The notes under the pieces are model-generated. The model was not told where the DNA came from, did no database searches, and saw nothing but the letters and a program-made list of their open reading frames with translations. Shown here piece after piece: positions 11,408-44,644 of a DNA stretch of 64,000 nt (position 1 is its first letter; each line of letters opens with the position of its first letter). Location: the sequence record NC_027364.1. One strand, 5' to 3'. Position numbers and translations under genes: made by a program.

Positions 11408-11506
11408 GGAACTGTGTTAAAATAATTTAACTTATCAGTTCCTTTGTTACTTCATGAATCATCCGTGTGTTTAAAAGGTAAATCTCTTTGCTGTCTTGAT
11501 GTGAAC

Positions 11507-11534
11507 ATTATATCACATCGTTTCAACTTGTCAA
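11507..11534 (-). promoter_or_regulatory. Sigma70-type early promoter
   Basis: TTGACA-N16-TATAAT with TG extension. Confidence 0.7.
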
Positions 11535-11599
11535 TCACTTTTTTTCTTTTTTTTCAAACTCACATCTTGTGTCGCTTGAAAACTTTATGTCTGATGCTT

Positions 11600-11627
11600 A
11601 TTGTATCACATCATTCTATCTTGTCAA
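11600..11627 (-). promoter_or_regulatory. Sigma70-type early promoter
   Basis: TTGACA-N16-TACAAT with TG extension. Confidence 0.65.
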
Positions 11628-11650
11628 CATTTATTTTTAATTCATTTTTC

Positions 11651-12031
11651 TTACATATGAATAGAAAATAACTGTTTAAAATCATCACAACACAATGTTA
11701 ATTCAGTTATTATCATTGCATCTGTCAGATATATGTACTGACCTTCAACATAATAAGGTGAAGTACATATTCTGTCAAGTGATGTAAACATTATAGAACT
11801 TTTAAATTCTCTTTGCAAGGGGATTTTGGTAAATTCATAAAGATTATTTTCTTTACAAATTCCATACCCAAACTTGCTAAGACGTAAACCACCGCCAGTT
11901 CTGAAATTTTCAAAAATTGACATCAGAAGCATACGGTCTGTTATTTCTGAATCTGATTCATGTACTTCCCTAACTTTGGAAAGTACATTATTTTGATATT
12001 CAGTACTGTTATGTGATGGTTCTGGAAACAT
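11651..12031 (-). CDS. Hypothetical protein
   Basis: 126-aa ORF in operon orientation. Confidence 0.7.
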   Translation of the reverse strand: MFPEPSHNSTEYQNNVLSKVREVHESDSEITDRMLLMSIFENFRTGGGLRLSKFGYGICKENNLYEFTKIPLQREFKSSIMFTSLDRICTSPYYVEGQYIYLTDAMIITELTLCCDDFKQLFSIHM

Positions 12032-12034
12032 ATA

Positions 12035-12430
12035 TTAGTCTCCAACAAAACCTTGACGTGCAGCATAAGATGGTGCACCAGGCTCATTATAGTGTTGTAC
12101 GCCTTCTTTGTCAATTGATGGTCCCATACCTTCAGTTCCAAAACAACCTGCAATGGCTTCCAACACTTCTTCATCAGCAACTTCAGTACTTTCATCATTA
12201 TATCGAATGTCAGACAAAATGTCACAGGCTTTTTGTAGTTTATCTACAATTTCTTTTTGGTCTTCACCAGATTTAATCTTATCAACAATATCAATAAGAC
12301 ATTTGGTAATATCCTTAAGAACATCAACTGCTACAACATCGGATTCAACTTCAACTGAAAAACTTTCGTCTTCATCTCTTCCGGTAATTTCGTCTAACGC
12401 TTCAACTAGTTCACGATAATTATATTGCAT
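12035..12430 (-). CDS. Acidic hypothetical protein (putative head-internal)
   Basis: 131 aa, D/E rich. Confidence 0.7.
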   Translation of the reverse strand: MQYNYRELVEALDEITGRDEDESFSVEVESDVVAVDVLKDITKCLIDIVDKIKSGEDQKEIVDKLQKACDILSDIRYNDESTEVADEEVLEAIAGCFGTEGMGPSIDKEGVQHYNEPGAPSYAARQGFVGD

Positions 12431-12431
12431 A

Positions 12432-13412
12432 TTATTTGTCTCCTAAAAATTTCTTGTATTTTTCTTGGAGACTTTCAAAAATATCTTCTACTTCTTCATC
12501 AGAATCATCTTCCAAGTCAATGTTACCTTCAGGTGAATCATCTTCTTCACTTTCATTAACATTTAGTGGGTTATCTCCTAATGCAGTGCCTGGGAATTTT
12601 GGTTCAAATTTATGAACACGATTTTCGTTCCCTTCATTATCATAATACTCAGGTTCTGGACGATTGTCAAGATCTTCATCTACAACACGTCTCCAATAAA
12701 ATTGATTGCCTTTTGCAATTACAACAAAATGGTCACCTTCAACACCATTAGTCTTTAGTTGACCATCACGAACGGCATCAGCTTCTGTTTCATATGGACC
12801 ATAATCAGTACTGTTAGATGGTTCTTCATCTTCAGAGATACTTAGATCTGGTAGAAATTGGGTATCTTTCATTTCTTTATCGGTAGCAGGATTACCCTCT
12901 ACTGAAAAATCTTCGTCTTCTTCTTCGTTAATACCAGCAAGAGATAGCATACGACTAAAATCGAATTCTTCTTCAATAATTTCTTCTTCTTCCTCATCGT
13001 CTTCTTCAACTGATTCTAGTTGAGGTTGACCACTAAGGTCAAGAGAAAAATCTTCTTCACCTTCTACACCTGGTTCTGAAAATTCAGCATCCATACTAAC
13101 TTCATCTGTGTCAGCACCAAAATCACCAACATCAGCGGAAAGATCATCAACTGCCGCTGCTAGTGGGTCTTCAACTGAAGTTTCAATTCCACCAATTTCT
13201 TCTTCAGCACCAATAGAATCGAGATCTAGTGGAGCAATAGGTGGAAGAGATGGAGTCATAGACCCCATAGATGGTACTGGAGCAGCAACTACTGGGTCTT
13301 GACGTTCAGCTTGACCAGCAAGAGCTAACATACGTGATAGAGTTTCCAAATCATCAGATTCTAAACCTGCGATATCGATTTTAACTTGTGCTTCATTAAT
13401 TTTTTTAGCCAT
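12432..13412 (-). CDS. Highly acidic protein, putative prohead core/scaffold-like
   Basis: Very D/E rich, repeated SRMLxLAG motif, several (I/L)xE sites. Confidence 0.5.
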   Translation of the reverse strand: MAKKINEAQVKIDIAGLESDDLETLSRMLALAGQAERQDPVVAAPVPSMGSMTPSLPPIAPLDLDSIGAEEEIGGIETSVEDPLAAAVDDLSADVGDFGADTDEVSMDAEFSEPGVEGEEDFSLDLSGQPQLESVEEDDEEEEEIIEEEFDFSRMLSLAGINEEEDEDFSVEGNPATDKEMKDTQFLPDLSISEDEEPSNSTDYGPYETEADAVRDGQLKTNGVEGDHFVVIAKGNQFYWRRVVDEDLDNRPEPEYYDNEGNENRVHKFEPKFPGTALGDNPLNVNESEEDDSPEGNIDLEDDSDEEVEDIFESLQEKYKKFLGDK

Positions 13413-29156: not shown

Positions 29157-29556
29157 TCAAACTCCTTTCGTATATATGGTATACGTTCATTATACTATTA
29201 TATAGATCAAAGTCAAATCCAAATGTGTCATCAATGAACTGATATTGCAGATATTCTTCATATGAAGCATCAATTGGTAATGATCCAGAACGAATATCAT
29301 CTGATTTAAAATCGTCAATGTATCTTAATGTTATGTCTTCATCAACCGTGATATCTATCATCAACGTATCGTCACTGTACCATAGGTTGTGTATACGGAT
29401 GTAAAGTCTCTTAGTACGATTAAAACTAGATACATTGGTATTGCGATGGAGTTTATCTAAGTTGAAGTAAAAACCAGACTCGTTCTTACTTATGTTTTTC
29501 ATATGTTCTGCAATCGAATTAATTATATAATCAATGTTGAATGTTCTCATAAACAA
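29143..29556 (-). CDS. Hypothetical protein (FIDDTF family)
   Basis: C-terminal QYQFIDDTFGFDF. Confidence 0.7.
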   Translation of the reverse strand: MFMRTFNIDYIINSIAEHMKNISKNESGFYFNLDKLHRNTNVSSFNRTKRLYIRIHNLWYSDDTLMIDITVDEDITLRYIDDFKSDDIRSGSLPIDASYEEYLQYQFIDDTFGFDFDLYNSIMNVYHIYERSLNGHS

Positions 29557-30186: not shown

Positions 30187-30194
30187 AGTATATA

Positions 30195-30527
30195 TTACTC
30201 TTCGTTTTCTGTCAAATCATCAAGAACTGGGTGTTCTGGATGGTTTCGGCGGTGTAATTTAATGCTTTTGTCTTTACTGAATACAGTTTCCATTTTTTCA
30301 AATGAATCACCAATTGCTTTGTATAAATCTGCTGCATCGGCAGTAACTGATTTACTGCCTGATGTTATAGTCACAGAGTATTGAGACTTATGCTCTTTCT
30401 TCACATGAACTTCAATATCCATTACAGTTGAAGTACGGAACTTTTCAAGACATTTAGCACCATCGTAAATTGCATCTTGAATTGCTGTAGTAAAATCAAC
30501 ATTACCTTGAATATTTAATTTTAGCAT
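30195..30527 (-). CDS. Ribosome hibernation factor-like protein (HPF/RaiA, S30AE family)
   Basis: MLKLNIQGNVDFTTAI ... ADAADLYKAIG.SFEK aligns by eye with HPF MQLNITGNNVEITEAL ... AEGQDMYAAID.L.DK. Confidence 0.7.
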   Translation of the reverse strand: MLKLNIQGNVDFTTAIQDAIYDGAKCLEKFRTSTVMDIEVHVKKEHKSQYSVTITSGSKSVTADAADLYKAIGDSFEKMETVFSKDKSIKLHRRNHPEHPVLDDLTENEE

Positions 30528-39385: not shown

Positions 39386-40042
39386 TCAATCATGTTTATT
39401 CAATTTCTTCTGTTCTTTTTTCAAAGCTTTCATATGACGACCAAACTCTCGAACATGCCATAGATGATCGGTTTCCCATAATTCTTGACGTAACCTACGT
39501 TCTTCTAGTAGTTTCGACTTGTCAATGTTATTTTTCTTTTTTTGTACATTAAAGAAATTATTCATATGTTCTTGGAGAAGATTACGACCTTTAACTTTTT
39601 CAAGAAACTCATCAACTGTTTCAGTTTTATTCGAACGTAGTTGATTACATCTGGAGCACATAGTATTAAAGTTTGACTCTAAATCAGGTCCACCCTTAGA
39701 TGCCAGATGATTATGGTCAACTGTCATTAAAACTTCATAAAGACCACATACAGCATATACATTTAAATGTGGTTTACCATATACTGGATCAGAACATAAT
39801 GAACGTTCAATGCGTACTTCAGTAGCTTCAATCCCACATGCCACGCATTTTGGATTCTTAACAAAAGTAAGAACTTTTTGTGGGAAATATCGAAAAGTAA
39901 TACCATTTAAAGTGTAGCGTTTCATCTTAGTACTTCGTTGATTTAATTCTTCAAGAAGTGATAATTTTGTCGTATAGTAAACATGATATTTGTTCATTTT
40001 ATTCCTTGATATTGATTTTAATATCTTTACCTTGTAAATCAC
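39386..40042 (-). CDS. Free-standing HNH-type endonuclease-like protein
   Basis: CVACG ... TVDHNHLASKGG.D...NFNTMCSRCNQLRSN. Confidence 0.75.
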   Translation of the reverse strand: MIYKVKILKSISRNKMNKYHVYYTTKLSLLEELNQRSTKMKRYTLNGITFRYFPQKVLTFVKNPKCVACGIEATEVRIERSLCSDPVYGKPHLNVYAVCGLYEVLMTVDHNHLASKGGPDLESNFNTMCSRCNQLRSNKTETVDEFLEKVKGRNLLQEHMNNFFNVQKKKNNIDKSKLLEERRLRQELWETDHLWHVREFGRHMKALKKEQKKLNKHD

Positions 40043-40307
40043 GAATAGTTTTAATCAATGCGTCGTGTTTTAAAGCACATTCATTGTAGACTGCATCCCA
40101 ACGAGTAAGTACTTTAAGAATTTCTGCACCATCATAACCTTTAAAACCATTTTTGTCAATCATAATTTTTTGTGGTAGAGGTGTATCATCATCACATCTT
40201 TCTAACAGAATTTCTTGTTTAATTGGTGCAGGGGATTGTAGTTTTACTTGTTCGGCACACCCACTTATAATTAAAAAAGAAATAAACGGAACTAATAATT
40301 TTTTCAT
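39999..40307 (-). CDS. Outer-membrane spanin (Rz1-like lipoprotein)
   Basis: Signal peptide with lipobox ISGC, Pro-containing body, YNECALKHDALI; overlaps the i-spanin stop. Confidence 0.75.
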   Translation of the reverse strand: MKKLLVPFISFLIISGCAEQVKLQSPAPIKQEILLERCDDDTPLPQKIMIDKNGFKGYDGAEILKVLTRWDAVYNECALKHDALIKTIRDLQGKDIKINIKE

Positions 40308-40678
40308 TTGAATTTATTCCTCGCAGCTTGAGAATTTTGTTTTAGTTCATTCAGTACTTTTACACCATCCTCATCTAAACATACATTCTTATAAACTTCA
40401 CGTTCTACAATAAAAGGAACCTTTGTTTCAATAACTTTAGCATTATCTTCCATGATTTTTTTAGTTTCAAGGTAATTTTTTGCATTTTCTTGTTGCATTT
40501 TATCCAAGGCGGTATCAACTTTTTTAGCTATTTGTTGCTCTATGCTTTGTTGATAGCCACTGTAATAAGTATTAGCTTCCCAACCAGCATAAGCTGAACC
40601 GCCAATCAATAATACAAAAGAAATTGGTTTCCAAAATGGAATCAGAATTTTTGAAACAATTATTTCTAACATACTCAT
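40304..40678 (-). CDS. Inner-membrane spanin (Rz-like)
   Basis: N-terminal TM, coiled coil, VYKNVCLDEDG; paired with the lipoprotein. Confidence 0.75.
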   Translation of the reverse strand: MSMLEIIVSKILIPFWKPISFVLLIGGSAYAGWEANTYYSGYQQSIEQQIAKKVDTALDKMQQENAKNYLETKKIMEDNAKVIETKVPFIVEREVYKNVCLDEDGVKVLNELKQNSQAARNKFK

Positions 40679-40731: not shown

Positions 40732-41151
40732 TTACAACATGTTTTGAATATGTTCTGCTAGTTCATACAGCTTAGTTTCATTATTCTCGAACTTTTCATC
40801 AACTTCAACATTGAATTTTTCTTCTAGTTCCATCACCATTTCAAGCCAATCAAGCCAATCAAAATTGAATTTTTCTTCTACTTCTAATTTAGTAAGATTG
40901 AAGTTCGCTGATACATCATTCTCTGATGTATCACAGTAACGAGTAGTGATGAATTTGACAATTTCTTTTTCAACATCGTTTAATTCACGAGTTTGATATT
41001 CGGGCTGAAGATACCACCATTCTCCCTTATTAATAGATTCCAATTCTTGTTTGATTTCATGCATTACTTTATAACGGTCAGTACTTTTATCAATAGAATT
41101 TACTTCTTGGTTCAATACATGTAGTGCATTTTTAATACGTTCATTTAACAT
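40732..41151 (-). CDS. Acyl carrier protein-like protein with DSL changed to DWL
   Basis: FNFDWLDWLEMVMELEEKFNVEV aligns with AcpP [23 protein letters not shown]. Confidence 0.7.
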   Translation of the reverse strand: MLNERIKNALHVLNQEVNSIDKSTDRYKVMHEIKQELESINKGEWWYLQPEYQTRELNDVEKEIVKFITTRYCDTSENDVSANFNLTKLEVEEKFNFDWLDWLEMVMELEEKFNVEVDEKFENNETKLYELAEHIQNML

Positions 41152-41164
41152 TTTATCACCTTAT

Positions 41165-41194
41165 AAAAAAAGAGAACTCCATATGAAGTTCTCT
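41165..41194 (-). terminator. Rho-independent terminator
   Basis: agagaact/agttctct plus T tract. Confidence 0.7.
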
Positions 41195-41225
41195 GATTAT
41201 ACATAATTACTTTTTCTATGTCAAG

Positions 41226-44015
41226 TTATAAATCACGGAAACGATTTGGTGTGTTTAAGCGGTACATTGAGTATAATCCCAATCCACGCATAATCTCACC
41301 TGCCCAGAAACCAAAAAACATACCATTATCAGTACCTTCTCTAACTGCTGGACTCCATGAACCATTCATTGGTGAACCTGGATTTACAATAACATAATTC
41401 TTTTGAAGTTCGAGAACTAAGTTATCAGCGAGTGTTGTTAGACCTTCTATTTTACATCCAGCCAATCCAGCAGCACAAGCCCCAGCTAACCACAACCCAC
41501 ACATATGACCTGTAAAGTCCCAATCTGGACCTTCAACTGTGCCATCTTTATTGAAGATTGTTGGTGAACGACCATCATTATCTTTTTGAAATTGAATTAA
41601 AAAGTGAATCCAATTCTCACAAAATTCAACAAGATCTGCTGGTGGTTCAATTCCTCTCTCTGCGAGTTCTTGCCATGCTCTGGCAGCCCCAAAGAACGCA
41701 CGTGGTTCATACCCACTCCATGCTTGATCACCCCAATGTAGCATAGTAAATGTATCTGGTTCACCATATTTTAAGTTATCCCAGCGGTTCCAAACATATG
41801 CTTGTGCACACGGACCAACAGTACCGAATTGTTGAGTAAACCATGTTTGGGAATCTTTCATAAAGCTTAACATGTTTCCTAAGCGTGTGTTATCTACTGG
41901 CTGGTCTTTAAAACAATATATCACAGGATATTGATAACCTGGATACGGTAAACCACGCCATCCTGAATACTGGTTCGCATACGGGTCAGTGATGTTAGAA
42001 AATGGTATTGTTCCTGGTGTGTAATGCAATGAGTTTAACAAATAATCCTTGATTACACAATCCCCTAACTGTGCAGTATATGGTGATTCACCTGCAATTG
42101 TTATTGAAAATGTCATAGTATAGTCATCACCGTCAGCATCCGTGTATAATTCTGGAATGTCATTAATACAATACCAATCAATTATTGCAGCAACACCATC
42201 TACTGGGGTTGTATCAGGTAAAATAGTAATATCTTCTAGTTCACTATAAACTGGTGCATCTGGTCTTGGGTCAGAACTTGGATGATTTGGCTGATACCCA
42301 GATAAACGTAATGTATCGGAACTTAGTGTGATTGTAGTCCATTCCCCGTGTGTTGCAGGAATCATCCACCACCATCTCCAACCATTATCATCTACAATTC
42401 TTATATTGTAATCATCTTCATATGAACGATAGGTAAAAGATTTAACTTCAGACTTATTTGTTGCTAATAGCCAAAATCCAATAACAGCACCATCATCTTC
42501 ACCACAAACTAACTGATTAATGGTATCGCGGCGTGTAACTAATATATCAGTACTATATATCATTTCGGACGTAGCTGCACCATAAGGAACAACAATTCTA
42601 CTATCAGCAATTATATAAGGGGAACCATCTGCTTTCTTTTCTCTAACAAATGCACTTAAAGGTGTTAATGAATGTGTGATATTTTGGTCTTTACTTTCCG
42701 GTAAGCCACAACGATAACGAACAACATCATGGTCATTTTTTGTTTTTGACAATTCCAGTACTGGTTTAAATGATAACGGCTTACCATCATCACATACACC
42801 ACCATAGTCTACAAGTAATTTAGAATCAGCATTGACCCTGAACCAAATAGCTTGTTGTTCCATTGTACTTTGTGCACTTTGGTCTTGCCTGATAGTAATA
42901 TATCCTAGAGAATTTCTACCAAACTTAGCAATAGCATCACTTGGATAAAAATATTCATAGGAAATACCATCAGTGAATGGTGTGGTTACAATTGTACTTT
43001 GTCTGAAAAATTTATCTCTGGAGTCAATATCACCATAAGCATAACACGTTAGTAGTGAACATTTCCAACCCAAATAATGTTTTCTTTCTTTTGTTATTTT
43101 ATATAACAAATAAGAAGCATCACTAAACCATAATTCTGCATCTGATGCGTTATCAGCAAATTCCAAATCAATTGGAACATGAAGAGGGCGGTTGTGTTGC
43201 ATTTCATTTCGTTGAATTATCACACCACCATATTCTACTGGTTGACGATTTGCAAAATTTAATTTATATACACCATTAATTGTTGTATTCTTTAATTGAA
43301 CAGTTCCTTTTTCAGATTCGTCAAAACCTTCTGCTAAAATATTACCATCCCAGTCGATTTTTCTACCCATGAAATCGATAATCCAGTCAACATCATATTG
43401 TTCACCTGGTGTATCCCAATCAACACTACCATCTGGTAATAATGCTTTTACTGACGCATTTATTTGGTTCCATGCTAAAGCACCTTTGAATGCAAATGTT
43501 ACTTTATCCAAGAACTGACCATAATATGGTGCACCATGTGGTATTTTACATTGTCCATTTGTAAATGTAAATTCTACACCCTTGAAACCACCATGTGTAG
43601 GCCATCCATCATCAGCTAAAGGCCAGTTAGCCAAAATCGGTTCTTTGGCATTAACTATCCAGTTACATTGCAGTGGGGTTGGTGGGTCTGGTAATTCACG
43701 CCCAGCATAAAAGTACTGATGATATGCATCCCAGTACCATTTGGCTTTATCTAAAAACATTGGATCATTTGTTGCCAGATACGCATAAATGTATCCTAAA
43801 ATTAATAGACTTTGACCTTCTGTTGTTCCGTCACCGTTTGGTTGACCTTCCATTGCAGAATAGTTAATAAAATGGCGGTTGTTCGCCAAAACACCCTGAT
43901 TGTTCACCACATAATGCTGTACTGTTGGGTCTATTGTATCACCAGTATTTCTTTCAATAAATTTGTGATGCCCATAAAGAAGTTGTACAATATTATCAAT
44001 ATTATTGTTTAACAT
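41226..44015 (-). CDS. Large GH8-like (BcsZ-like) glycoside hydrolase, probably virion-associated
   Basis: TTEGQSL and NASDAELW resemble BcsZ TSEGQSY and SASDGDVW; long inserted beta-rich segment. Confidence 0.6.
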   Translation of the reverse strand: MLNNNIDNIVQLLYGHHKFIERNTGDTIDPTVQHYVVNNQGVLANNRHFINYSAMEGQPNGDGTTEGQSLLILGYIYAYLATNDPMFLDKAKWYWDAYHQYFYAGRELPDPPTPLQCNWIVNAKEPILANWPLADDGWPTHGGFKGVEFTFTNGQCKIPHGAPYYGQFLDKVTFAFKGALAWNQINASVKALLPDGSVDWDTPGEQYDVDWIIDFMGRKIDWDGNILAEGFDESEKGTVQLKNTTINGVYKLNFANRQPVEYGGVIIQRNEMQHNRPLHVPIDLEFADNASDAELWFSDASYLLYKITKERKHYLGWKCSLLTCYAYGDIDSRDKFFRQSTIVTTPFTDGISYEYFYPSDAIAKFGRNSLGYITIRQDQSAQSTMEQQAIWFRVNADSKLLVDYGGVCDDGKPLSFKPVLELSKTKNDHDVVRYRCGLPESKDQNITHSLTPLSAFVREKKADGSPYIIADSRIVVPYGAATSEMIYSTDILVTRRDTINQLVCGEDDGAVIGFWLLATNKSEVKSFTYRSYEDDYNIRIVDDNGWRWWWMIPATHGEWTTITLSSDTLRLSGYQPNHPSSDPRPDAPVYSELEDITILPDTTPVDGVAAIIDWYCINDIPELYTDADGDDYTMTFSITIAGESPYTAQLGDCVIKDYLLNSLHYTPGTIPFSNITDPYANQYSGWRGLPYPGYQYPVIYCFKDQPVDNTRLGNMLSFMKDSQTWFTQQFGTVGPCAQAYVWNRWDNLKYGEPDTFTMLHWGDQAWSGYEPRAFFGAARAWQELAERGIEPPADLVEFCENWIHFLIQFQKDNDGRSPTIFNKDGTVEGPDWDFTGHMCGLWLAGACAAGLAGCKIEGLTTLADNLVLELQKNYVIVNPGSPMNGSWSPAVREGTDNGMFFGFWAGEIMRGLGLYSMYRLNTPNRFRDL

Positions 44016-44016
44016 A

Positions 44017-44644
44017 TCATACTCCTGCTCTAATTAATGCACCGTACCATGTAACTCCTTTATCATATGTTTCTAATGAAATAATATCTTTTTCACCAAT
44101 TTCATAAGAAAGAACAACTGGTCTGTTATATGACCATTTAACATTAGAACCCCAATTAACTAGGTTTGAACCTGTTTGTTGTGTTAATAGGATGGTAATT
44201 GAATAAACTTCAGTAGGAGCCGCACCAATCGAAATAGTAGTATTTCTATCAGATAAATTAATATTAAAAACAGCATTGCCCGACAGTGGATTAATTAAAA
44301 TATTATTAGAACTTAATACATTATATAACTTATTACTTGCACTATCATACAATGTTACCCATTCTGTTTCATGATTCTCATTAGTAGCTTTAGCTTTTAT
44401 TTTTACATTATTTTCGGAAGAAGTCATTCCAGTCCAGCCAGAAATAATAAAAGAACTGTTTTTATTTGTTCCAAATGATGCAATTACTGAATCACTAAGA
44501 GAACTATCTTCACCGTCAATAGATCCGAGTACTGACAATGTTAAAACCATCATTTTTAATGTCTACACCAGTTGCACCTGAAAAATTATTTTGAAATTTA
44601 ATAACTCCGGTAGTGTGGATATCTGTGAAAATTTGTTGTGCCAT
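44017..44644 (-). CDS. Fibre-tip-like structural protein (apparent extra base near 44528)
   Basis: AAGGA SD plus MAQQIFTDIHTTG at 44644. Deleting one C in AGTACTCGGA joins NIVST to GSIDGEDS. C-terminal ILLTQQTGS..VNW..NVKW domain. Confidence 0.6.

Follow-up and report, generated by a model that had tools for sequence, protein, structure and literature searches.

What does a protein do when it has the fold of an acyl carrier protein (ACP) and lacks the serine to which the phosphopantetheine arm would be attached? The question is raised by gp062 (RefSeq ACQ29_gp062) of Escherichia phage PBECO4, a jumbo myovirus of 348 kb that belongs to the Rak2-like genus Asteriusvirus. The window analyzed here is the first 64 kb (positions 1–64000) of its genome record, NC_027364.1. 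An earlier, sequence-only reading of this DNA had noted that the C-terminal part of the protein resembles Escherichia coli AcpP, that the D-S-L motif of carrier proteins reads D-W-L in it, and that the product might be a nonmodifiable decoy of host ACP that hijacks the stringent response (SpoT), the chromosome condensin (MukB), or envelope lipid synthesis. We find that the resemblance extends to the predicted fold and that the loss of serine is real and inherited, and we conclude that gp062 is most aptly seen as a new form of the ACP fold that does without the cofactor, in a two-domain family specific to phages. As to what it binds, we tentatively place the docking sites of host proteins ahead of the alternatives, a phage-encoded partner among them.

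An ACP fold without the serine

Taken alone, the sequence matches to ACPs are weak, but they agree with one another. gp062 matches ACP families of PHROG at E = 8e-7 and 5.5e-6, TIGR00517 at E = 4.4e-5 (23.3 bits, below the cut-off of 70.45), and Pfam PP-binding_2 at E = 0.0028 (18.3 bits, below the threshold of 32). It falls below the curated cut-off in every ACP family model scored, and PF00550 does not match gp062 itself. Dozens of ACP chains in the PDB match the protein, from E ~2e-3, with the D-S-L of the ACPs aligned to its D-W-L. It is through its relatives that the family is tied firmly to the PP-binding domain, since PF00550 is matched by 15 of the 22 aligned sequences (21 family members and E. 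coli AcpP), with a best E value of 1.7e-16.

Structure prediction points the same way. The AlphaFold2 model of gp062 (predicted local distance difference test, pLDDT, 84) begins with two long helices, at residues 2–19 and 25–41, which form the helical N-terminal extension that the sequence-only reading had described, and continues into a helical bundle. In a Foldseek search of the PDB, the best 50 matches were all ACPs, with template-modeling scores by target of 0.6–0.78. VIA-align superposed model residues 55–139 on entire ACP chains, with Z up to 9.6 and root-mean-square deviations (rmsd) of 2.1–2.7 Å over 74–80 residues. In the model, the C-terminal domain of gp062 thus adopts the ACP four-helix fold; the likeness to AcpP proposed from the letters is borne out by fold matches to ACPs only and by sequence matches that all run in one direction. 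For the N-terminal domain, a profile search of PDB sequences returned nothing below E 0.09, and neither a Pfam match nor an LYR-type match was found. Neighbors of gp062 in the ESM Atlas scored within the chance range and were not used.

Helix II is the recognition helix of AcpP. BLASTP gives 48% identity between helix II of gp062 and that of E. coli AcpP, and 10 of its 16 residues are identical in the two proteins. At the eight positions that we take to be the helix II contacts in ACP complex structures, gp062 has DWLDEMEE where AcpP has DSLDEMEE, the same residue at seven of eight. The acidic helix II is therefore kept, as had been claimed. Across the aligned family, D98 and D101 never vary, and E104 and E110 do so only rarely. 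The net charge of gp062 is −16; that of its ACP domain is −14, compared with −15 for AcpP.

Trp99 aligns with AcpP Ser36, the phosphopantetheine serine, in HMMER, BLASTP, and MAFFT alignments alike. The motif D-W-L-D-W occurs in seven PBECO4-like genomes (PBECO4, phAPEC6, 121Q, slurp01, SP27, UB, and CRJP21), in the more distant WPEC5 (70% identity), and in three metagenomic clusters. The nearest relatives with serine, A4 and ph0011, use the codon TCA, from which TGG is two substitutions away. A two-base change that is present in eight phage genomes and three metagenomic clusters rules out a sequencing or isolate error, and Trp99 is therefore real and inherited. The tryptophan reported by the sequence-only reading stands, but it does not extend to all close homologs: A4, ph0011, and P0005–P0008, of the same genus as PBECO4, retain the serine. 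To judge from its sequence, gp062 cannot carry phosphopantetheine at the canonical site.

The gene has nonetheless been maintained. Between PBECO4 and WPEC5, both Trp-bearing, the ratio of nonsynonymous to synonymous substitution (dN/dS) is 0.21 at a proportion of synonymous differences (pS) of 0.50, and neutrality is rejected (P = 2e-7). Among the PBECO4-like phages, 6 nonsynonymous and 8 synonymous codons segregate (P = 0.001); the corresponding ratio of polymorphisms, pN/pS, is 0.16, close to the value of the neighboring genes, and the PBECO4–121Q pair has a dN/dS of 0.17. Because these ratios lie well below the neutral value, the gene has been under purifying selection after the loss of serine. 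All eight Trp-bearing genomes that were checked keep the reading frame, the full length, and the motif of helix II. By evolutionary criteria, the serine-less gene is still functional.

Two branches of a phage-specific family

A profile search of 1.8 billion representatives returned 21 matches, about 12 of them with the full two-domain layout. By tblastn, the gene is present in all Rak2-like genera, namely Asteriusvirus, Alcyoneusvirus (RaK2 and K64-1), Mimasvirus (CBB, GAP32, and XbC2), Eneladusvirus (BF, pEa_SNUABM, and fHe-Yen9), and the Munch group. A maximum-likelihood tree divides the family into two branches with support of 95/87. We compared them in an alignment of 9 branch-1 sequences, 12 branch-2 sequences, and AcpP, and in a tree set of 9 branch-1 and 15 branch-2 sequences.

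Branch 1 comprises Mimasvirus, Eneladusvirus, Munch, and two metagenomic members. Its sequences read L-D-S-L-D in 9/9 cases, are variable at the position of AcpP Thr39, and match ACP hidden Markov models (HMMs) at E ~1e-13, with 42–49 bits that are still under the curated cut-off. Branch 2 comprises Asteriusvirus, Alcyoneusvirus, and six metagenomic lineages. Here the Thr39 position is occupied by Trp (W102 in gp062) in 12/12 aligned sequences, as against 0/9 in branch 1, and the former serine site is held by S, W, N, R, E, T, D, D, and K. In most branch-2 members, moreover, position 121 is aromatic and position 122 is Glu; in gp062 the pair is F121-E122. The PBECO4 protein carries the branch-2 signature D-x-[LWC]-D-W as D98-W-L-D101-W102, together with the S/T-x-[DE]-R-Y motif of the family in its N-terminal hairpin (S23, R26, and Y27); S23 and Y27 hardly vary in either branch.

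We mapped these traits by parsimony on the tree of 15 branch-2 and 9 branch-1 sequences, built with the trait columns removed. The Trp at the Thr39 position requires one change. The serine site requires at least seven state changes and at least four switches between Ser and non-Ser, all of them in branch 2. The Trp99 phages form one clade (support 96/92, or 86/79 without the trait columns) nested among Ser-bearing Asteriusviruses. Since the serine site varies freely across branch 2, Trp99 itself is probably not the functional innovation. The innovation that defines the branch is probably the fixed W102, and on the sequences compared here Trp99 of PBECO4 is one of several outcomes of a relaxation of the serine site that followed it. 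Members without serine are also old: RaK2, P0012, P0015, P0016, and P0018 persist at 25–35% identity, with length and motif intact. The two sister branches amount to a natural experiment: the cofactor serine is needed in one and dispensable in the other, where purifying selection acts on the protein without it.

The split bears on annotation. Public records call the product a hypothetical protein or a carrier domain-containing protein, or label it acyl carrier protein, acpP, or D-alanyl carrier protein; the last three labels, given in several Asteriusvirus genomes, are functionally wrong for the Trp, Asn, and Arg variants.

Possible targets: host docking sites or a phage partner

The explanation that we rank first, while holding it only tentatively, is that gp062 is an obligate apo-ACP look-alike that occupies the ACP-docking sites of host proteins. 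The ancestor would have been a phage carrier protein composed of an N-terminal helical hairpin and an ACP domain with the DSL serine. On the branch leading to Asteriusvirus and Alcyoneusvirus, a Trp would have become fixed one helical turn past that serine, at the AcpP Thr39 position, which we place where the acyl pocket opens between helices II and III. Once W102 was fixed, the serine may have become dispensable and have been replaced repeatedly, by Trp in the PBECO4/WPEC5 lineage. Because the protein has no canonical attachment site and selection still keeps the gene, we infer that it acts by protein–protein contacts. These would be made at the start of helix II (D98, D101, W102, E104, and E110) and by F121-E122, with W102 and F121 filling the cleft between helices II and III where, as we understand acyl-ACP structures, the pantetheine arm and the acyl chain enter. 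Made by host RNA polymerase from its own predicted sigma-70 promoter, gp062 would then occupy the docking sites of one or more ACP-binding proteins.

The ranking draws on the seven shared contacts of eight, the absence of an oxygenase-like partner that other genera possess, the gene's own promoter, its absence from a virion proteome, and a precedent for toxic apo-ACP. Together, the lost neighbor, the AcpP-like contacts, and the promoter lead us to prefer a mechanism at host docking sites. Entry titles in the PDB record ACP in complex through its helix II face with FabZ, LpxD, MukBEF, FabH, FabD, and AcpS, and nonmodifiable ACP mimicry is structurally plausible for the modeled PBECO4 protein. 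In phAPEC6, the gp062 counterpart is not among the 62 virion proteins, which include the products of the neighbors gp314c and gp315c (PMC7247149). The S39A form of ACP, an obligate apo-ACP, suppresses the growth of E. coli, and apo-ACP has been reported to inhibit sn-glycerol-3-phosphate acyltransferase (PMC4736557).

The predicted promoter overlaps the stop codon of the fiber gene gp063 and is followed by a hairpin and the ribosome-binding site (RBS) of gp062. The window has three perfect sigma-70 sites, this one included, and none of the three is on the noncoding strand. Among near-consensus sites in the window, 14/15 lie on the coding strand, a bias that makes chance matches unlikely. The sequencing runs in which this DNA occurs are metatranscriptome or genome contigs that carry neither depth nor strand, and the timing of expression is a prediction. 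The promoter is conserved in 121Q, slurp01, and ph0011, each of which keeps the whole promoter–hairpin–RBS module, and is weaker in A4. The hairpin (folding energy −13.5 kcal/mol, z −3.5) would serve as the terminator of the upstream tail-fiber gene and/or as a 5′ stem of the gp062 mRNA.

Several observations weigh against a host target. Identity between gp062 and AcpP over the whole ACP domain is 24%. Carrier proteins of every kind conserve helix II, and its conservation here therefore does not point to host clients in particular. Within branch 2, helix II is degenerate in the RaK2 and P0013 members, with 4–5 of 16 residues identical to AcpP, and these proteins barely score as ACPs (E 0.15). 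The enterobacterial hosts of such phages have almost identical AcpP, so the branch as a whole does not conserve mimicry of host AcpP. As for the promoter, it is a match to the consensus and not a mapped start site. Mass spectrometry detected the Eneladusvirus homolog at a low level in the virion (PMC7760394). Two Salmonella-propagated Asteriusvirus assemblies have damaged copies: SD-6_S16 (L029:701-1081) has an in-frame loss of 39 nt that removes residues 125–137 in helix IV, and SD-1_S14 (L030:701-1070) has a deletion from about residue 117 into the start of the i-spanin gene. Unless these are assembly errors, the gene is dispensable at least there; both genomes are 20–40 kb shorter than those of their relatives, which implies either that many accessory genes were lost or that the assemblies are faulty. 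Finally, the conservation of the N-terminal domain in both branches would fit a phage-encoded partner, and coupling to an oxygenase-like gene outside Asteriusvirus suggests that the ancestor had such a partner inside the phage. Read across the family, the sequence data do not favor host hijack.

A narrower form of the host-directed explanation strikes us as doubtful. In it, the built-in tryptophans (W102 in all branch-2 members, with W99 in PBECO4 and W100 in RaK2) would replace the pantetheine arm, giving a genetically encoded "pre-loaded" ACP that plugs the pantetheine tunnel of an ACP-dependent enzyme, and gp062 of PBECO4 would be an early-expressed inhibitor that shuts down a host process in need of ACP (for example, the synthesis of lipids or of lipid A, MukBEF, or SpoT).

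The strongest competitor, which we hold to be almost as likely, places the target inside the phage: the ACP-fold domain and the hairpin would together form a cofactor-free subunit or regulator that binds a phage-encoded protein, and host ACP clients would not be involved. That partner would ancestrally have been the oxygenase-like phrog_21561 protein or the products of the RlaP operon; in Asteriusvirus it would be a different one. An overlap of 4–29 nt joins the gene to the phrog_21561 gene just upstream in RaK2, CBB, GAP32, BF, XbC2, Kaldavass, Yen9-03, Munch, and several metagenomic contigs, and the two are translationally coupled in every Rak2-like genus except Asteriusvirus. phrog_21561 proteins are ~190 aa long and 55–64% identical across genera, with an HxD...H pattern and conserved cysteines. 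Structural neighbors in the ESM Atlas and weak Foldseek matches point to 2-oxoglutarate (2OG)-Fe(II)/PhyH-type oxygenases; as the predicted model is poor (pLDDT 57), this assignment is a lead that draws on the HxD...H pattern and those neighbors and matches. A carrier protein paired with an enzyme of this kind would bring to mind the hydroxylases and halogenases that depend on carriers. RaK2 (Thr) and P0015 (Asp) keep the oxygenase-like neighbor despite having lost the serine, the N-terminal motif is kept in both branches, and helix II diverges strongly between genera, as would be expected under coevolution with a phage partner. The RlaP nucleotidyltransferase block also lies close by, with the ACP-like gene between it and the spanin pair; the gene starts 10 nt after RlaP in WPEC5 and 1 nt after it at locus L007. 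However, no homolog of phrog_21561 was found in Asteriusvirus or in any Escherichia phage, and the ACP-like gene is under purifying selection in Asteriusvirus all the same. In PBECO4, moreover, it has a promoter of its own and is parted from RlaP by a mobile tail-fiber cassette.

The position of the gene might suggest a role in lysis, in which gp062 would act together with the spanin pair or with some other protein of lysis, perhaps regulating its timing from the cytoplasm. The sequence-only reading had placed it directly upstream of a spanin pair, and this is so: gp061 belongs to an Rz-like spanin PHROG, gp060 has the lipobox LIISGC, and the gp060 counterparts of Munch and XbC2 are annotated as o-spanins. 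The order ACP-like gene, i-spanin, o-spanin recurs in every genus and metagenomic contig examined, and the adjacency is conserved synteny. A terminator scan detected none in the 53-nt gap between gp062 and gp061, which would permit cotranscription, and a study of Eneladusvirus remarked on an ACP beside the spanin (PMC7760394). But these phages are collinear throughout the region, so the adjacency alone is weak evidence, and the junction of the ACP-like gene with the spanins is annotated with a terminator in Munch and with a promoter in Yen9-03. The strongly acidic gp062 has neither a hydrophobic segment nor a signal peptide in its 139 residues, and family searches returned ACP-type matches only and no lysis-protein domain. 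Lipoprotein acylation by Lgt and Lnt draws on phospholipids rather than on acyl-ACP, and we regard a lysis accessory as improbable. Less probable again is that gp062 is a decaying relic, left without function in PBECO4 when the serine and the oxygenase partner were lost, with too little time for its removal. Close relatives retain the serine, which dates the loss as recent within the genus, two assemblies carry deletions, and gp062 scores far more weakly against ACP models than branch 1 does. Yet neutrality is rejected both within and between Trp-bearing lineages, every Trp-bearing genome checked has an intact gene, and the serine-less members named above have persisted to much deeper divergence. 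We give least credence to the idea that gp062 is still a carrier, modified elsewhere, for instance at Ser23, or with another group, that shuttles a substrate in a phage pathway. Ser/Thr23 is nearly invariant in both branches, and branch 1 resembles a real carrier in its serine and its HMM scores. But Ser23 sits at a helix-capping position of the hairpin with no D-S-L context, a tblastn search with E. coli AcpS as the query found no AcpS homolog in any Rak2-like phage (Sfp-type enzymes were not searched), and we know of no phosphopantetheinyl transferase that uses a site of this type.

The surrounding region and known systems

The coordinates of the gene, its parts, and its neighbors are collected in Table 1. 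On the minus strand, PBECO4 has the order gp063 (a 929-aa tail fiber), gp062, gp061, gp060, and the HNH endonuclease gene gp059.

Table 1. Coordinates of gp062, its parts and neighbors in the window, and examples of phrog_21561 in relatives
Feature	Coordinates	Strand	Basis or remarks
gp062 coding sequence (ACQ29_gp062)	40732..41151	minus	139 aa + stop; open reading frame (ORF) list; PHROG 18343, E 7.8e-61
gp062 N-terminal domain, aa 1–56	40984..41151	minus	helical hairpin; family motif S23-x-D-R26-Y27
gp062 C-terminal ACP-fold domain, aa 57–139	40735..40983	minus	Foldseek/VIA-align ACP matches; ACP-family HMM matches
Helix II, aa 98–113, DWLDWLEMVMELEEKF	40813..40860	minus	corresponds to AcpP D35–F50, recognition helix; alignments
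TGG codon, Trp99	40855..40857	minus	aligned to the phosphopantetheine serine, AcpP Ser36
TGG codon, Trp102	40846..40848	minus	AcpP Thr39 position; invariant marker of the Ser-relaxed branch
RBS AAGGTGA	41156..41162	minus	ends 4 nt before the gp062 ATG; read from the sequence
10-bp hairpin + T7 run	41164..41194	minus	terminator scan; kept in relatives
Perfect sigma-70 consensus promoter, TTGACA-17-TATAAT	41196..41224	minus	12/12 match; predicted function
i-spanin gp061	40304..40678	minus	53 nt downstream of gp062; PHROG 1152, Rz-like spanin, E 6.6e-29
o-spanin gp060	39999..40307	minus	lipoprotein, lipobox LIISGC; PHROG 2425; 4-nt overlap with gp061
Tail-fiber cassette gp065–gp063	41226-44644	minus	42-aa virion protein, 177-aa fiber protein, 929-aa fiber protein
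phrog_21561, RaK2 ORF008	L003:4015-4578		
phrog_21561, CBB gp162	L004:4412-4981		
phrog_21561	L009:1115-1690		

The tail-fiber cassette, a variable insertion, stands between RlaP and the ACP-like gene in PBECO4. It is absent from slurp01, WPEC5, and ph0011, where the ACP-like gene follows the RlaP-family nucleotidyltransferase gene. A functional link between gp062 and the tail-fiber genes is ruled out, as the ACP-like gene stays in these three phages where the cassette is missing. slurp01 and ph0011 retain only the last ~35 nt of the fiber gene, together with the promoter–hairpin module, a remnant that suggests exchange or deletion of the cassette at this site. On the other side of the spanins, the HNH endonuclease gene (39386-39997, minus strand) directly follows the o-spanin gene in Asteriusvirus, RaK2, and Munch; none is annotated at that position in CBB, GAP32, BF, and XbC2, and the patchy distribution fits a mobile insertion of the homing type.

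The layout in which a near-consensus sigma-70 promoter lies over the end of one gene and is followed immediately by a hairpin and the RBS of the next recurs on the minus strand of the window, at 41164-41224, ~30187-30215, and ~29189-29216. At two of these three places a T run accompanies the hairpin, which would end upstream transcripts and/or form a 5′ stem on the new mRNA. Elsewhere, at 11500-12700 on the minus strand, six sigma-70-like sites matching at least 11 of 12 positions, two of them perfect, fall within 1.2 kb over ORFs of 94–131 aa; this may be a strong early-promoter cluster. The PBECO4-like phages also have an extra Trp in the linker of the ACP-like protein, which reads GEWWYLQ in the region of residue 45 (41017-41019). 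Every other Asteriusvirus has GE-W[FLVY]L, which makes GEWWYLQ a one-codon insertion specific to the PBECO4-like clade.

ACP is among the most connected of bacterial proteins, and no natural viral mimic of it has been characterized in the literature searched. On characterized phage ACPs, that literature yielded only annotations and one computational result, a 2026 preprint in which host FabZ is predicted to be contacted by a phage ACP that is not further specified; neither the serine loss nor the two branches nor any functional test of the protein is described in the literature that we searched. If the serine-less form binds host clients of ACP, phage takeover would have a factor of a new type, which would also offer a ready scaffold for probes or inhibitors of ACP-dependent enzymes. 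Should its partner be a phage protein instead, the form would add a case to those in which an ACP fold is reused as a cofactor-free subunit.

It is useful to set gp062 beside the systems it resembles. With E. coli AcpP and the PP-binding domain (PF00550 and TIGR00517), it shares the four-helix bundle (Z 8–9.6, rmsd 2.1–2.7 Å), the helix II motif D-x-L-D-x-x-E-x-x-M-x-L-E-E-x-F, and a strongly acidic character. It differs in having Trp for the pantetheine serine, a second Trp at the Thr39 position, and an added 56-aa N-terminal helical domain, and also in its 24% identity over the domain, its scores below the cut-offs, and the lack of a carrier function at the canonical site. A second comparison is with ACPs that act as structural subunits, where the fold is a protein-binding module, as in the mitoribosomal Ribosomal_L50 family and in the ACPs of MukBEF, the Ycf2-FtsHi motor, and respiratory complex I. 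Ribosomal_L50 is an ACP-like clan member without cofactor, and one member of the gp062 family has a weak match to it; the MukBEF, Ycf2-FtsHi, and complex I assemblies appear among the fold matches of gp062. Most of these subunits still carry acyl-pantetheine.

Engineered apo-ACPs, in which Ser is changed to Ala, and apo-ACP that accumulates in cells share with gp062 the ACP fold, an intact docking helix, and the lack of a prosthetic group. They are nearly identical to the cellular ACP, whereas gp062 is only 24% identical and bears an extra domain. Counterparts are also found in other phages. CBB gp163, GAP32_159, and Serratia phage BF gp158 have the same two-domain layout, the same N-terminal S/T-x-[DE]-R-Y motif, and the same site upstream of the spanins. 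Unlike gp062, they keep D-S-L-D, as do 9/9 members of branch 1, lack the Trp of the Thr39 position, reach E 1e-13 against ACP HMMs, and are translationally coupled to the oxygenase-like gene that PBECO4 lacks. On the tree, these two-domain ACPs of Mimasvirus and Eneladusvirus form one family with gp062.

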